Shown: positions 15,693-21,655 of the stretch, in pieces | How positions within the stretch are numbered: position 1 is the stretch's first letter | Layout: the number at the start of each line of letters is the position of its first letter | Assembly (NCBI GenBank): GCA_026936335.1 | Contig: JAPMXV010000001.1 | Location: forward strand, 186,001 to 250,000 | From: Mantamonas sphyraenae STR306 | Lineage: Eukaryota > Protista > CRuMs | Length of the DNA: 64,000 nt | Reading direction: 5' to 3' | Made by a program: the position numbers and the translations under genes | The notes under the pieces: generated by a model | Seen by the model: the letters and a program-made list of their open reading frames with translations, nothing else | What the model was told of the DNA's origin: nothing | The model's database searches: none

Positions 15693-15926
15693 GACACCCA
15701 CCCTTGACTGTGGTGGTGATGGTGGCGGCCTCATCCTTCCCTGTGCTGCCTCCACTGGCGCACCCTCACCCTCCCACCCATCTCCTGCCCCCCCCCCCCC
15801 CCCTCTCACCCCCCTTCCCCCTTTCCCCTACCATCAACACCAGAGGAAATCTCATCGTGCATACCAATGCATGATCCTCTGTGTGGGAACCCGATCGCCT
15901 CTGCCCAACCCAACCAAAAGAAAACA

Positions 15927-18900
15927 ATGCCCTCATCCGACTCGGACGATTCCGACACAGACAATGGATCTGAACTGGCATTGCTGTTTGCCGATGGTCA
16001 GGTGCCTGTGGTATCCAGTGCTTCGGACGCCGCCAAACTGGCTCAACGCACCCTCAACGACGAACCCAGCCCTCCCGAGGCACCATCCCCTACCCCAGGT
16101 TCATCTTCCTCCTCTTCCTCCTCCTCTTCCTCCTCTCCTCTCCTGTCTCCATTGCCTTTACGTGTGACCAGGAGATCCTGGACATGGTGGCGGAGCTGAC
16201 GTCGCAGGGGGCAGTGCACCGGCACGTGGACACACCGTACCCTCGCACAGTGCGTGAGTTCTACGTGTACTATGAAGAGATTGAACAGGACGAGGATCGA
16301 CTGAACGAGTTCAAGGCCATCCAGGTGTCTGCCAACCCGGGCAAAACCATCCTGGGGTACATTCCCAAGTACGTCAACTCCTTCCTCAACTCCAATGGAG
16401 GCACCATCTACTTTGGCATCGAAGACGATGGTTTGGCCATGGGCGTCGTCCTCAGCAGGGGTCTCCGCGACAAGTTGCGTCTGCACGTCGATTACATCCT
16501 GGAGAACTTCTGGCCCCCCGTGCCCCCGGACCTGTTTGAGATGCGCTTTGTGCCTGTGGTACGCCTGACAATGGACAACAAAGTGGATGCCACCTTTCAG
16601 GAACGATGGGTGGTCGAGGTGGCTGTGGCCAAGGGCCTGGCTCCCGTCACCCTCATGGGCAAGAACAGGCCCCAGGCCTTTATCCGTCGCGAGGGTGGCT
16701 GTTTCAAGATGCACCGTGAAATGATTATGCAGAAGGTGTTCTATGAAGACACGGCCCTGGGCAAGGGTATCGAGAAGGCCAGCAAGGGCAAGTGGGAACG
16801 CCAGGACAAGCTGACGTCATCTTCGTCCTCCTCTTCCGCCGCGTCCGGCGCTTCCGGCTCTTCCGGCAGCAAGGGAAAGATCATGCAGGACAATGCATAC
16901 ACACTGGAGGAGCCACCTGAGGATGCGATGGGGCGTGAGAAGGAGGTGGATGCGCTTGTGGAGCAGGTGTTGGCCCAACGTGGACGAGGCAACGGGGTGT
17001 GTTGCGTGAGCATCCATGGACCAGGTGGCATGGGCAAAACCACCCTTGCTCTGTTGTTGGCCCAACGACTGCGTGCCAAACATGGTTACAAGGGCAACCA
17101 GTTTGCCATCAAGCTCAAGGGCAGCACCGACAACCCTGTGCCCACAGACGATGCCATGGCATACACTGTCCGTGCCTTCTACCCAAGTGCCACCATGCCC
17201 AAGAGCACCTCTGAACTCCATGCCTTCTACCTCTCCTGTTTCAGAGTCAACAAGTCCATCCTCTTTCTGGATGACGCTGCCTCCTTGGACCAGGTCCAAC
17301 ACCTCCTCCCTTCCACCCCCGTCTGCGTCATCGTCACCTCCAGACGCAATCTGGCTCTCGATGCACACGTCTCCGGTGCCATCAACTACCGTCTGGGCCG
17401 CCTGGACTACGCCGTCAGTGGCCAGCTCCTCATGAACATGTGGACCGACGCACGCGAGCGCCATCTGCGCACTCTGTCCTACAGTGGCGGTGCCTCGTCC
17501 ATGCTCGATGCCAACCAATTGACCATGGAACAGGCTGTGCAGCTGGCCGAGCTGTGTGATGGCCTGCCTCTCGCTGTGCGCGTGGTCGGCGGAATCCTGA
17601 CTAAATCCATCAACGTGCGTGTGGGCCCTCTCATGGACAAGCTGCTGAACAGCTCGCAGGCCCTGTTGCACCTGGACAACAGAGTGGTGGAGAACAGTAT
17701 GCGCACCTCGTTGGCTCTGCTCACACGTGGTCAGGCAGACCTGTTTGTGCGCTTGGGTGTGTTCCAGGGCCCCTTTGACGAAGACGCAGCAACAGCCGTG
17801 TCGGGTCTTCAGGGTGAGGATGCTGCTGTGGATGAGGTGCGTGAACGCATGGCTGTTCTCATCGACTATTCTCTGGTGGAGTTTGATGTGGGCACGTGGC
17901 AGTACCGCCTGCACGACCTTGTCCGCGAGTTTGTGCGCGGTCTGATGGCCAGCGAACACGATGCAGACACGGTGCGCATGTGGCATGCCCATGTGGTCGA
18001 CCATTACCTCAATCGTGTCCATGACTGCATTGACCTGCGCGAGGAGGATGAGGAACGGGCCTTGGCTCACTTCGACCTCATTGTCGACCCCGTGTGTGAA
18101 GCCATGCACCTTCTCCTCACCGACCCTGCCCTCTGCACCTCCCTCTCTCGAGTCCGAGGAACAGGTGCCCAACACAACGACGATGTGGATGATGACGTGG
18201 ATGATGTGGACCATGCCCAGTCGCTGGTGGCCCATCTGCTGGCAGACGCAAGGCCTCTGTTCCACGCACGCCTCGACGCACCCCACCTGCACACACTGTA
18301 CACACAGGTGTTGGAAGAGTCTGGTGATAGTATGGATGTGCACATGCGTCCTGTGCTGCTGAGTGGACTGGCATGGGCCCTGAGTGAACAGGGGATGTTT
18401 GACGAGGCGCAGAAGAGGTACGAAGAGGCAGAGCAGGCGTGTGAGAGGGAAGGGGCACCTGCACGTGTGGTGGCCCAAGTCAAGTTGGACCTGGGTGAGC
18501 TGTTGTGTGAACGGTGTGAGTATGACGAAGCGGAACGGGTGTTGGAGGAGGCGGTGCGTGTGCAGGGGGAGATTGCACGCGAGAGCACAGCCATGGCACG
18601 CACGCTGGTGGCACTGTCGTGGTTGCATGAACAGCAGGGACGATACGATGAGGCCATGGACGAGGTGAAGGAGGCGTCGCGGATGTACAGCCAGGCACAC
18701 CATGGCCAGCAACGACGCAGCGAGCAGGTGTTGTGTCTGACACGAGAAGCCAAACTGTTGAAGATCCGTGGGCAGAACAGCCAGGCGTTGGCATTGCTGC
18801 AGCAGGTGGAACAGTTGCAATGTGTGTTGTACGGAGACGAGAGTGTGGCTGTGGCACGCACACGCAAGCGGATGGCCAAGGCATTGGGCTCTCTGGGTCG

Positions 18901-20028
18901 GCATGACGAAGCATTGCAAGAGTTGGATCGATCGCTGCGTGTGCTCTCCTCTGTGTTGGGCGACAGTCATCCCAGTGTGTGCAGTGTCAAACGCTCCCTG
19001 GCCTTCAACCTCTTCTACTACCGCAGTGAGGATGCACAGGCCGAACGCATGTTCAACGAGGTGCTCGATGCATGCATGCAACGTCTGGGCAAGGATCACA
19101 TCGAAACGGTGTTCACCATGAACGATTTGGCCCTGTTGTACAACCACATGGGACGGTACGACGAGAGTGAACCCCTGTTCCTGCAGAGCCTGGACATTCG
19201 AAAGAGACTGTTTGGTGCAGAGCACCCGTACACAGCAGTGGCTCTCAATGACCTGGGCAACCTGTATCGTCTGCAGGGCAAGGACGATCTGGCGGAACAG
19301 TATCTGTGTCGAGCGCTGGACATTCGCAAGCGAAGGTTGGGACCAGGCACCCCCGAGGTGGCACGCACCATGAACAACCTGGCCATTGTGTATCGCAAGG
19401 CCAAACGCAACACGGAAGCTGCAGAGCTGTACGACGCCGCGTTGGCCATTCGCATTCGCCTGCTGGGCGAGGAACACAGTGAAGTGGCAGCCACATACAA
19501 CTCCATGGCCACCCTGTACCTGTACAAACGCGAGTATGAACGTGTCGACGAGCTGCTCCACAAGGCACTGGCCATCAACAAGCAGACCTTGGGCCATGCC
19601 CATCCCAACGTCATTCAGAACCACATCAACCTGGCCAACCTGTACCGCACCCAGAAGCGTGACGACGATGCCATCGCCAGCTTTGAGCAAGCCATTGCGC
19701 TGGTTCGTGAGTCCCAAGACGGCGACTCGGCAGAAGGTGGCCGACAAGCTGGTCAGATCAAATCCATAGTGCCTCTGTATTCCAAACTGCTGCTCAAGCG
19801 TGGAAAGGCACATCTGGCTCACGGTCGCATCGACAAGGCCACTGCCGACTTCCTCGACGCCCGACGAGTGTTCACAACCGACGGTGGCGAGTGGAGCAAG
19901 CGTCTCGCCGAGATCACACGTCTTCTGGAACGATGTCGTGTGGTGAAAGAGGAGGAAAAGAAGGACGACGACGAAGTGGTCGTCGCAGACGATGGGGTGA
20001 AAACCACGAGCGGCGCTGCAGCATCGTC

Positions 20029-20064
<36 letters not shown>

Positions 20065-20191
20065 CGAAAGCCTAATGGCCAAGACGACGCCTACAGCAAG
20101 CGTCATGCCGACGCTGATCATGGTATTCCTTTTGAGCGTGCTGATGACACTGCTCATTTGGAACTGGGAACAAACACACCCTAAAATTTGA
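15927..20191 (+). CDS. NLR-like protein: Schlafen/AlbA_2 - NB-ARC - TPR repeats - C-terminal TM (frameshift near 16158; main ORF 16184-20191)
   Basis: EDRLNEFK and FLNSNGGTIYFGIEDDG (AlbA_2). GPGGMGKTT, LFLDDA, IVTSRR, CDGLPLAV and RLHDLVR (NB-ARC). Multiple LG.(D/E)H...A..N.LA TPR repeats and a hydrophobic tail. Confidence 0.9.
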
Positions 20192-20253
20192 TTCACAATG
20201 AAATCTCACCAACGCTTCAAACCGACCAATTTACATTTCAATCAAATTTTTCA

Positions 20254-20847
20254 TTATGTTTCCTCTGTGTCAGGTTCCACTGTGTTTGTCTCTGCTTCCT
20301 CGCACATCTCTTTCAACGAGGCACGCAAAGTGTCATCGACAATCAACACGAGAGTGTGCTCCTGGAAAAACTCGCTAAAGGAGTCTCGGACAAAGCCAAG
20401 CTTCTCCTCAAAGAGAGCCAGGCTGCCGCTGTTGCTGGTGCCAATCTTGACCGTGAACTGGGTGATTGTGTCCAGGTGTGCCAGTGCATAGTGCATCATG
20501 AGACGCAAGGCGACTGTGGCGTATCCCTTGCGCCGGTAGGCTTCCTCTGCAATCATCACTTCGAGTTCTGCGTTTGCGCGGTCGGTGGGGTCCACAAAGA
20601 AGAGATTGACGTCGCCTACCATGTCTCCAGTGTCCTCGTCCACAATAATAAAGGTGAGTTTGTCATCGTCCTTCTGCCAGCTCTCCTGCATGGCGTATTC
20701 CTCGTCCAGGCTGAGCGGTTCACTCGCAGTTTGCTCCTGCAGCTTGGGGTCAGCCATCCACGCGTGGTATGTTTCCACGTGTTTGCGCTGGTACGGCACA
20801 AGCCTGACGGGCTTCAAAGTGATGCTGGTGCTCTCGTTGATGCGCAT
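20254..20847 (-). CDS. NAT9: N-acetyltransferase 9 (GNAT)
   Basis: MRINE..LVPY...HVETYHAWM...TASEPLSLDEEYAMQESW..DDDKLTFII, GDVNLF, EVMIAE. Confidence 0.95.
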   Translation of the reverse strand: MRINESTSITLKPVRLVPYQRKHVETYHAWMADPKLQEQTASEPLSLDEEYAMQESWQKDDDKLTFIIVDEDTGDMVGDVNLFFVDPTDRANAELEVMIAEEAYRRKGYATVALRLMMHYALAHLDTITQFTVKIGTSNSGSLALFEEKLGFVRDSFSEFFQEHTLVLIVDDTLRASLKEMCEEAETNTVEPDTEET

Positions 20848-20978
20848 TGGGACGGGGTGGTGGAACGAGTTTGGTTGGTTTGCAGGCAGCGAGCAAGACA
20901 CACCGGGGTTCGTTCACACAAGGGGCATCGAATGAATCTGTACATGGCATCCATCGACTATTATCACCCACCCGCCTT

Positions 20979-21510
20979 TCACATCCTCTCTTCGGGCAAG
21001 GAGAAGCCTACCCGCTTGGCAAACTTGTCGACGTCGCTCTGTTCGTCCTTGTTGTCGGCCATTCCCATGTCCAGAATGATGTCCTGTTCATGGAGACAGA
21101 TACGGGGAACGGGGAGGAGGGAAAGGTTGTGTGGTGAGCCCAGGGCTAAAGAGAAGGAGGGAGTGGGTGGGTGGAGAGAGAGAGGGGGGGGCACTCACCC
21201 TGTGGGTGCGCATGTGCTTGAAGCTCTGTGCCACCTGCCATGCTTGTGTGACCAATGTGTTTGCCTGTTGGGCATCCTGCACATCCCTATTGTCTTCAAA
21301 CTGCTGTCGAACCCACGCCCCAATCGACTGCTTGTCCAGTTGCACCTCTGTTCCGGCCATGGGCTTGGTCTTGTCTGCACGCGCCAACACAGCTGCAGGC
21401 AACAGCTCCACACCCACTTGGGCATCCCCAGCCATCCTATAGCTCTGTCGCATCAGTGCCCTGTATGTGGCAAGTGCAGATGGTCCCTTGGAGGAGGAGG
21501 AGGAGGACAT
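20979..21510 (-). CDS. Mitochondrial LYR-motif (Complex1_LYR) protein, 2 exons
   Basis: TYRALMR...VRQQFEDNRDVQD. A GTGAGT donor near 21198 and a GAACAG acceptor near 21084 join to DIILDMG..AKRVGF. Confidence 0.7.
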
Positions 21511-21655
21511 CGGCAAGGTGTGGGTGAGGGTTTGGTTTGCCTCTGCCCACGCAGGCCAAATCACAGTGGAGAAGGGTCAGGTGGTGTTTGTGTCTGTGTG
21601 TTTCTGTGTGTGTGTGTGTGTGTCTGTGTGTGTGTGTGACTGCAGTGACCAAATC

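Follow-up and report, generated by a model that had tools for sequence, protein, structure and literature searches.

A tail-anchored NB-ARC–TPR protein with an N-terminal AlbA_2 domain in Mantamonas sphyraenae: a candidate protist member of the Avs9 and SAMD9/9L design

The window analysed here is a 64,000-nucleotide stretch of DNA from Mantamonas sphyraenae (CRuMs), covering 186–250 kb of a large contig in the nuclear genome assembly. The gene described below lies about 202 kb into this contig and has eukaryotic genes around it; its features are collected in Table 1. The ORF translation is uninterrupted, with zero internal stops, and is embedded in a stop-free frame of 1405 codons. The local GC content, 0.58–0.59, is the same as that of the remainder of the window. 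This is a real, intact, nuclear gene.

A sequence-only reading of the locus had placed the start at 15927 and had seen no intron. The main ORF is indeed uninterrupted, but the ATG at 15927 belongs to an ORF in another frame (15867–16199), and the span 15927–20191 is not divisible by three. Because the frames differ, that start can be joined to the main ORF solely via an intron, and it cannot stand without one. Enumeration of GT..AG pairs for such an intron yielded dozens that are compatible, with none singled out, and the peptide of the upstream ORF resembles the N-terminus of none of the homologues. On the other strand, an antisense ORF of 1001 aa (16817–19822) overlaps the gene; neither it nor the neighbouring ORFs gave a Pfam match, and we treat it as a shadow of the GC-rich gene.

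Table 1. Features of the locus (positions in the window)
Feature	Position	Strand	Basis or remark
Upstream ORF in a different frame, containing the start proposed earlier	15927..16199	+	Candidate 5' exon or 5'UTR
Complete ORF	16184..20191	+	1335 codons + stop; minimal model, first in-frame ATG at 16184
Single AlbA_2 / Schlafen-fold domain, aa 21-192	16244..16759	+	Pfam, fold
E37-D-R-L-N-E42-F-K44, putative first two catalytic acidic residues	16292..16315	+	Alignment to SLFN13, SLFN11
G78-I-E-D81-D-G83, putative third catalytic acidic residue	16415..16432	+	Alignment to SLFN13, SLFN11
NB-ARC STAND NTPase module, aa 245-640	16916..18103	+	Pfam, motifs
TPR region, aa ~735-1190	18386..19753	+	Pfam, repeat HMM
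Core of the predicted C-terminal transmembrane tail anchor, L1311-W1326	20114..20161	+	Hydrophobicity

The N-terminal domain matches SLFN_AlbA_2 (PF04326) over residues 37–176 (E 1.6e-10; 41.9 bits, cut-off 25.3) and scores 47.3 bits in a genome-wide profile search. Its E37-x4-E42-F-K44 aligns with the E-x4-E-F-K of SLFN13 (5yd0) and SLFN11 (7zel), and the counterpart of D81 in both proteins is the second Asp of their G-V-D-D motif. In an alignment of 50 homologues, E37, E42 and K44 are invariant and D81 is at least 90% conserved. Thus, both the AlbA_2 domain with E-x4-EFK and GIEDDG that had first been read from the sequence and the equation of its Glu-Glu-Asp with the catalytic residues of SLFN11/13 are borne out. 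An AF2 model of the domain (pLDDT 89) has Schlafen, SAMD9 or bacterial AlbA_2 structures as all its top matches in Foldseek and VIA. It fits Schlafen C-lobes and the SAMD9 tRNase domain, including the DNA-bound SAMD9 AlbA_2 structure 7ksp, and on the SLFN chains the alignments span C-lobe residues only, about 170–335. The likeness to SLFNL1, suspected earlier, takes the form of a structural resemblance to the SLFNL1-type single AlbA_2 domain, with a TM of 0.74 to the SLFNL1 Atlas cluster. We infer that the domain is a candidate RNase with an intact acidic catalytic site. Prediction of an AlbA_2 homodimer returned a score of 0.00, which is no answer and counts neither way.

The NB-ARC match (PF00931) covers residues 252–484 (E 1.1e-9; 38.3 bits, cut-off 23.5), and the motifs follow in order: Walker A GPGGMGKT (279–286), Walker B LFLDD (360–364), TSR (385), GLPLA (460) and LHD (576). 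The NB-ARC is, as had been claimed, complete, and the ordered motifs with a C-terminal repeat sensor domain are those of a STAND (NLR-like) protein. In the repeat region, Pfam places TPR_12 (E 9.6e-71) and TPR_10 (E 2e-56) on eight stretches each. With a repeat HMM derived from the protein itself, six canonical 42-aa TPR_10 units are recognised in tandem (aa 893–1145; nt 18860–19618), and some five to six degenerate ones besides, between residues 743 and 1187. Since this makes about 11–12 units in all, the earlier estimate of more than ten was about right. A PADLOC run on the locus returned a generic TPR match only, and a feature search of the ESM Atlas only generic NB-ARC/TPR clusters.

The sole hydrophobic segment of the 1335-residue protein lies at its C-terminus (aa 1303–1329; mean Kyte-Doolittle 2.58), where the core LIMVFLLSVLMTLLIW is followed by nine residues and the stop. 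With one predicted TMD near the C-terminus and no other TMD or N-terminal signal, the product would be a tail-anchored protein, in agreement with the single C-terminal TM noticed at the outset. The tail is kept in all five full-length eukaryotic orthologues, equivalent hydrophobic C-termini being present in P0003, P0004, P0006 and L010; the Mantamonas tail combines strong hydrophobicity with a neutral end, and the orthologue tails are milder with basic ends. No tail anchor was seen at the C-terminus of P0018, a metagenomic bacterial protein and the one bacterial homologue examined in this respect. MAVS and the Bcl-2 family have a single C-terminal TMD that fixes a cytosolic signalling or oligomerising part to the membrane of an organelle. 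The parallel with the Mantamonas anchor is one of analogy only, with no sequence or domain homology; a constitutively membrane-anchored NLR-like protein is, to our knowledge, an unusual case.

The layout of an AlbA_2 effector followed by a STAND NTPase and TPRs is already known from SAMD9/9L, Avs9 and bNACHT34. AlbA_2 is the catalytic effector both of SAMD9/9L, which cleave tRNA-Phe, and of the cell-killing Avs9, and in bacteria AlbA_2 domains show an association with defence islands (PMC12680541); bNACHT34 is headed by a Schlafen RNase domain (bioRxiv 10.1101/2022.07.19.500537). The effector-STAND-TPR layout first proposed for the Mantamonas protein is confirmed as part of a real four-part architecture, and the order of its effector, STAND and TPR parts is that of Avs9 and bNACHT34. 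What is new here is the type of NTPase (NB-ARC), the presence of a tail anchor and the occurrence in a range of protists. In contrast to the bacterial AlbA_2-STAND-TPR proteins, among which bNACHT34 has a NACHT in place of the NB-ARC, it is encoded by a eukaryotic nuclear gene and has a low-complexity linker as well as the anchor that P0018, the one examined for it, does not show at its C-terminus. Location in a defence island, a criterion for Avs9, is inapplicable because the gene is eukaryotic.

SAMD9/9L share the AlbA_2-STAND-TPR core with the Mantamonas protein, but membership in that group is ruled out by the absence of their SAM, SIR2-like and OB-fold domains (no Pfam match at E≤1). The NTPase of the Mantamonas protein, moreover, is of the canonical NB-ARC type and bears GLPL and MHD-type motifs, a tail anchor is added at the C-terminus, and phmmer detects no sequence similarity to SAMD9 at E≤1. 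The label "Schlafen" that the gene had been given holds for the Schlafen/SAMD9-like fold and for the E-x4-E ... D constellation of the C-lobe, and the single-domain layout resembles SLFNL1. It does not hold for Schlafens sensu stricto (SLFN1-14), which have a two-lobe Slfn core, a SWADL linker and, in group III, a helicase. Since the Mantamonas protein has one lobe and not two, a single AlbA_2 stretch with no SWADL or helicase match in Pfam, it is not a Schlafen proper; furthermore, Schlafens are not regulated by a STAND switch. The closest functional analogues therefore seem, as judged by design, to be SAMD9/9L and bacterial Avs9 rather than SLFN11/13. The NB-ARC plus TPR_10/TPR_12 module itself is common to protist, fungal and actinobacterial (AfsR/SARP-type) NB-ARC-TPR proteins, but these differ in having DNA-binding, TIR or unannotated N-termini and no tail anchor.

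AlbA_2-NB-ARC(-TPR) proteins form a widespread, undescribed protist family, and our literature search found no paper on it. A word-indexed search with the AlbA_2 region retrieved P0001 only; the others came from an exhaustive search of representative proteins, in which 34 of the top 150 AlbA_2 relatives have a homologous NB-ARC, giving at least 34 AlbA_2-NB-ARC proteins. Named members come from 13 protist species, and the family extends over Amoebozoa, Metamonada, Ichthyosporea, apusomonads and Mantamonas sphyraenae. One orthologue is found in Thecamonas, and others lie on environmental eukaryotic contigs carrying Tctex-1, RalGAP and CCT genes. In Paratrimastix, the AlbA_2-NB-ARC module is joined to a GCN2-like kinase and a HisRS domain within a single predicted protein.

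Within the Mantamonas genome the AlbA_2 domain is single-copy (profile search). There are about 19 NB-ARC loci, and about a dozen NB-ARC-TPR_10 paralogues exist, so that an NLR-like STAND repertoire is present; a paralogue count had been called for by the sequence-only reading. Since a genome search with the protein's own NB-ARC recovers one weak paralogue only, the gene belongs to a separate, older lineage than the other NB-ARC-TPRs of the genome. The same reading had also suggested examining TPR variability and had held that a slow-evolving, single-copy housekeeping orthologue would speak against an immune gene. Between orthologues, the TPRs are 30–39% identical against 28–35% for the NB-ARC; the TPR region is thus not the more divergent, and no hypervariability is seen. 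The gene is single-copy; its orthologues have a patchy taxonomic spread and, at 28–50% identity, are strongly divergent. Sequence comparison places it in an old, taxon-congruent orthologue group and not in a recent lineage-specific expansion.

The bacterial protein P0018 has AlbA_2, NB-ARC and TPRs in the same domain order and in a bacterial gene context. It is 40% identical to the Mantamonas protein in AlbA_2 and 32% in the NB-ARC, as close as the eukaryotic orthologues; a narrower bacterial alignment used to seek related loci gave two. A split with 98% support separates the eukaryotic AlbA_2-linked sequences from all others in the NB-ARC tree. The AU test does not reject a single clade of these sequences with P0018 (p-AU 0.279), nor, with it, a single origin of the fusion. 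The eukaryotic AlbA_2 tree roughly follows taxonomy. Outside the family, the best NB-ARC relatives are actinobacterial BTAD-NB-ARC-TPR (AfsR/SARP-type) or XRE-NB-ARC-TPR proteins and one TIR-NB-ARC-TPR protein. These trees do not include the published Avs9 (P. fluorescens A0A7T4VS34), which was compared by architecture.

We propose, with a probability of roughly 0.5 and by analogy with characterised systems, that the gene encodes a tail-anchored NB-ARC STAND NTPase with an N-terminal AlbA_2 nuclease and a TPR sensor, which would act as an RNA-cleaving switch in defence, stress or cell death and would be a protist member of the Avs9/SAMD9/9L design. The protein would be held by its C-terminal anchor on an organelle membrane, facing the cytosol, and the TPR array, as in related switches, would keep the NB-ARC switched off, with ADP bound, until a ligand binds. 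By the same analogy, nucleotide exchange would lead to oligomerisation, and the single-lobe AlbA_2 domains would cluster into an active assembly that binds and cleaves RNA. Cleavage of tRNA or rRNA might then stop translation and so mount a defence, stress or cell-death response. The giant viruses that the sequence-only reading had offered as an example are one conceivable trigger. The RNase activity, the immune role and the target organelle are what we infer from these likenesses.

It is possible, though in our judgement rather unlikely, that the gene has a conserved regulatory task in housekeeping or stress instead of an immune one. Its product would be a switch of the Apaf-1 or RNA-quality-control kind on an organelle membrane, and its AlbA_2 domain would process or bind specific cellular RNAs in response to signals from within the cell, for example organelle damage or starvation. 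A single-copy gene with a conserved tail anchor, a TPR region that is not hypervariable and orthologues across several supergroups would suit such a regulator, as would the Paratrimastix fusion, and the roughly taxonomy-congruent AlbA_2 tree is as compatible with a conserved cellular role as with immunity. The patchy distribution and strong divergence of the orthologues argue against it, as do the link of bacterial AlbA_2 domains to defence islands and the defensive role of all AlbA_2-STAND proteins characterised so far (SAMD9/9L, Avs9, bNACHT34). We consider it improbable that AlbA_2 is a sensor or binder of nucleic acid and not the executioner, with RNA or DNA detected N-terminally and the signal passed on by oligomerisation or by TPR-bound partners. 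Some members of the superfamily only bind, for example DIP2311 and the RecG-related N-domains 3lmm and 2kyy; some AlbA_2 proteins, e.g., SLFN5, retain the triad yet mainly bind nucleic acid; and the match to 7ksp is to a DNA-bound form. However, effectors of STAND proteins usually sit at the N-terminus, and the strict conservation of E37, E42 and K44 and the near-strict conservation of D81 in 50 diverse homologues argue for selection on catalysis.

An artefact, be it bacterial contamination, very recent horizontal transfer or a dead gene, is scarcely credible. The whole architecture does occur in P0018, and the nearest NB-ARC relatives outside the family are bacterial. Contamination and recent transfer are nevertheless contradicted by the genomic context, the genome-typical GC content and the eukaryotic orthologues, to which the tail anchor is common, and the intact frame of 1335 codons speaks against a dead gene.

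Returning to the proposed RNA-cleaving switch, all AlbA_2-STAND nucleases characterised to date come from animals (SAMD9/9L) or bacteria (Avs9, bNACHT34), and the two groups have previously been argued to be convergent. The protist family, with its canonical NB-ARC, its full-architecture bacterial relatives and its presence in several supergroups, would bridge this gap and would make an inherited, transferred or convergent origin directly testable. It is tempting to speculate, tentatively, that AlbA_2-NB-ARC-TPR is an ancient eukaryotic module of innate immunity or cell death that goes back to one common origin with a bacterial Avs-type gene, whether inherited or transferred early, and did not arise by convergence. 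It would then have passed mostly vertically through Amorphea, CRuMs and Metamonada, with the tail anchor added in the CRuMs and apusomonad lineage, giving an RNase-armed NLR that fires from an organelle surface. If this were true, the protein would amount to a MAVS-like platform with a built-in translation-killing effector. The conserved tail anchor offers a simple handle for localisation and reconstitution.

The gene is a single open frame on the forward strand, and all the motifs that the sequence-only reading had named were located in its product (see the table). That reading had placed the gene at 15927-20191; the gene is there, but the proposed start did not hold, since the ATG at 15927 lies in a different frame and the span is not divisible by three. 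The open frame around the gene comprises 1405 codons in total. An intron joining the upstream and main frames is possible; enumeration gave many suitable GT..AG pairs, with none preferable to the rest, and in a comparison of N-termini the peptide upstream of the main ORF resembled no homologue. The CT-rich tract just upstream of the ATG, translated as poly-Ser in the upstream frame, could be coding sequence, belong to a 5′UTR or form the polypyrimidine end of an intron. The GC content of the window is 55-62%, and the antisense ORF inside the gene most likely arises as a shadow of the GC-rich coding sequence opposite.

Features of the gene, its product and related loci (window positions unless a locus handle, L, is given; residues numbered from M1 = 16184)
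Feature	Position	Strand	Remarks
Upstream ORF	15867-16199	+	holds ATG 15927; frame differs from main ORF
CT-rich tract	16099-16160		60 nt
Main ORF	16184-20191	+	1335 codons, uninterrupted
Antisense ORF	16817-19822	-	1001 aa; no Pfam match
Downstream ORF	20188-21639	+	483 aa; TTG start; overlaps stop codon of the gene; no Pfam match
SLFN_AlbA_2	aa 37-176		Pfam, E 1.6e-10, over curated cut-off
AlbA_2 motifs			E37-x4-E42-F-K44; G78-I-E-D81-D-G83
NB-ARC	aa 252-484		Pfam, E 1.1e-9, over cut-off
NB-ARC motifs			Walker A GPGGMGKT 279; Walker B LFLDD 360; TSR 385; GLPLA 460; LHD 576
TPR array			Pfam, TPR_12 E 1e-70, TPR_10 E 2e-56
Perfect TPR_10 units	aa 893-1145		six of 42 residues, in tandem
Hydrophobic stretch	aa 1303-1329		9 residues from there to stop
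Ankyrin-IQ-NB-ARC paralogue	L004:4517-8707	-	1396 aa; 29% identity; contig C8
CSD-AlbA_2-TerB/DUF533-like	L007:5710-6879	+	KSB1 bacterium MAG
STAND-Cbl_N2-SH2 fusions and CHAT protein	L024:4138-6339; L033:3444-5735; L035:3491-6685	+; -; -	

With 50 aligned homologues as input, AlphaFold2 models aa 1-205 confidently (mean pLDDT 89.4, pTM 0.82). The model's first Foldseek matches in the PDB are all Schlafens (SLFN12, 11, 13, 5 and 14; E 4e-9 to 1e-7), followed by the SAMD9 tRNase/DNA-binding domain (9o0d, 7ksp; E about 1e-6) and then by bacterial AlbA_2 proteins; when ESM Atlas entries are ranked by query TM, the chordate SLFNL1 cluster comes first (0.74), and bacterial AlbA_2 fusions to PemK, TPR or ABC ATPases are level with it. 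A Schlafen core was rejected, since it has two AlbA_2 lobes and the protein just one; the N-terminal domain is a single-lobe AlbA_2 of SLFNL1, SAMD9 or bacterial type. In HMMER alignments with solved chains, E37 and E42 fall on the E-x4-E-F-K of SLFN13 and SLFN11, and D81 on the second Asp of their G-V-D-D, which after tag offset are E209, E214 and D252 of SLFN11; the title of PDB 7zep, naming an "E209A" mutant, is consistent with E37 being E209. Among the 50 aligned homologues E37, E42, K44, N69 and G73 are invariant and D81, R95 and D96 at least 90% conserved, which argues that the predicted active site is under selection.

At the other end of the protein, a repeat HMM built from its own units finds 5-6 degenerate TPR units flanking the six perfect ones. 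The sole strongly hydrophobic stretch lies as close to the stop as is expected of a tail anchor. In each of the five full-length eukaryotic proteins, the query included, the last ~30 residues contain a hydrophobic tail, and thus the predicted membrane anchor is a conserved feature of the orthologue group. Basic residues follow the tail in the four orthologues (KGKARQ; RRAPGRRRR; YRNRRQRNVSRT; KW), whereas the M. sphyraenae protein has the neutral end NWEQTHPKI. The Thecamonas orthologue, P0003, also starts with MGGVSS..., a possible N-myristoylation signal besides its C-terminal anchor, and its Walker A reads GPPGIGKAS.

An exhaustive HMMER search with aa 1-239 against 1.84 billion representatives gave 968 matches at E<=1e-3, of which 166 reach E<=1e-10. 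A homologous NB-ARC is also present in at least 34 of the best 150, three of which (P0003, P0004, P0006) additionally match the query's own TPR region. Every match with an organism name is a protist: the apusomonad Thecamonas trahens (XP_013762160.1, annotated only as "tetratricopeptide repeat family protein"), the Amoebozoa Cavostelium, Arcella, Mastigamoeba, Mastigella and Pelomyxa (two proteins), the ichthyosporean Creolimax, the Metamonada Dysnectes, Monocercomonoides, Blattamonas and Paratrimastix, and two isolates of "Eukaryota sp.". Besides Thecamonas, three environmental eukaryotic contigs encode the full AlbA_2-NB-ARC-TPR layout; a Tctex-1 gene lies on one of them, and RalGAP and CCT genes on another. 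Other partners of the same AlbA_2 subfamily are NACHT, LRR (in a Blattamonas protein annotated as NLR), UBA-CSD, sometimes with a C-terminal XAF1_C (P0154, P0011, P0025), and U-box (P0017, P0023, P0032), so that the subfamily behaves as a mobile effector module. In the top match of the search, P0002 (NCBI, 2337 aa), SLFN_AlbA_2 is matched partially 19 times in tandem, each time by the first 68 positions of the model; this is a peculiar repeat protein or else a wrongly predicted one. P0016 (Paratrimastix pyriformis KAJ4455189.1, 2478 aa) joins RWD, protein kinase and HisRS-like domains, a GCN2-like layout, to AlbA_2 and NB-ARC in one predicted protein, either by a gene-model merger or as a real link of a tRNA-sensing kinase with an AlbA_2-STAND module.

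Bacterial relatives include the CSD protein of the KSB1 bacterium (L007) and P0018, an AlbA_2-NB-ARC-TPR protein of 1012 aa on a metagenomic contig whose small, tightly packed, co-directional genes point to a bacterial context. P0018 is as close to the M. sphyraenae protein (40% identity in AlbA_2, 32% in NB-ARC) as the eukaryotic orthologues are (40-50% and 28-35%). Outside the family, the closest NB-ARCs are those of actinobacterial BTAD- or XRE-NB-ARC-TPR proteins and one TIR-NB-ARC-TPR protein. The maximum likelihood trees were quick ones with many rows lacking a taxon label, and so give indications, not proofs. The one built from 72 NB-ARC modules has a branch (98% SH-aLRT) with the 26 AlbA_2-linked NB-ARCs of eukaryote type on one side, and P0018 sits at the base of the bacterial side, its placement not resolved. 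A constraint that unites all 27 AlbA_2-linked NB-ARCs in one clade lowers the log-likelihood by 2.65 units (p-AU 0.279), so that a single origin of the fusion is neither rejected nor demonstrated. The AlbA_2 tree unites the known bacterial sequences in a single clade (99%), and its eukaryotic sequences follow taxonomy roughly (Archamoebae, other Amoebozoa, Metamonada) on an unresolved backbone, with the protein of M. sphyraenae, which belongs to the deep-branching CRuMs, grouping weakly with Thecamonas.

Effector-STAND-TPR proteins with an AlbA_2 or Schlafen nuclease are already published for bacteria and animals; for a protist AlbA_2-NB-ARC family, or a tail-anchored version, we found no paper in an incomplete coverage of the literature, which does not prove absence. 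The parts of the protein, its intact catalytic and NTPase motifs, and the conservation of its layout, anchor included, are established from sequence. By analogy with STAND behaviour, SAMD9/9L and Avs9, we propose, with a probability of about 0.5, a tail-anchored NB-ARC switch that fires an AlbA_2 RNase. The TPRs would keep the switch off until a ligand binds; nucleotide exchange and then oligomerisation would follow, and the clustering would turn on the single-lobe AlbA_2 domains, with RNA cleavage leading to translation arrest. Since two lobes build the RNA-binding clamp of Schlafens, induced proximity would be a natural activation mode for a single-lobe domain. The AlbA_2 site of SAMD9/9L cleaves tRNA-Phe, and D45N in Avs9 abolishes cell killing (PMC12680541).

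The layout held by the orthologues might instead belong to a conserved regulator of stress or cell death outside immunity, a possible though rather unlikely reading. That AlbA_2 is a binder or sensor, not a nuclease, is improbable beside the intact catalytic motifs, and with the same layout found in other protists an artefact is barely conceivable. The number of paralogues had been raised in the sequence-only reading; genome-wide searches, which covered 25,061,354 bases in 78 contigs, find the AlbA_2 domain once. The published FALCON assembly of the species has 25.06 Mb, 78 contigs and 59.19% GC (PMC10492846).

A search with the protein's own NB-ARC returned one weak paralogue, the ankyrin-IQ-NB-ARC protein. 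With the Pfam NB-ARC model, 19 open frames gave 20 matches at E<=0.001, of which a single one fell short of the curated cut-off; the organism thus has an NLR-like repertoire. NB-ARC-TPR_10 genes account for about a dozen of these and look like a lineage-specific NLR-like expansion; contigs C67 and C73 have three each and C68 has four (loci L021, L022, L025-L032). Their products measure some 880-1670 aa, except for one that exceeds 2000 aa, and comprise 2-27 TPR units and an N-terminal region of 200-860 aa in which Pfam matches nothing. The gene is the only AlbA_2-armed and the only tail-anchored NB-ARC member among those examined, and belongs to an older, separate lineage, not to the local expansion. 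The repertoire also includes STAND NTPases (NB-ARC/NACHT) that continue into a Cbl-type EF-hand (Cbl_N2) and SH2, and a CHAT protease-like protein carries the same Cbl_N2-SH2 tail; it is unusual for phosphotyrosine readers to be combined with STAND or caspase-like domains.
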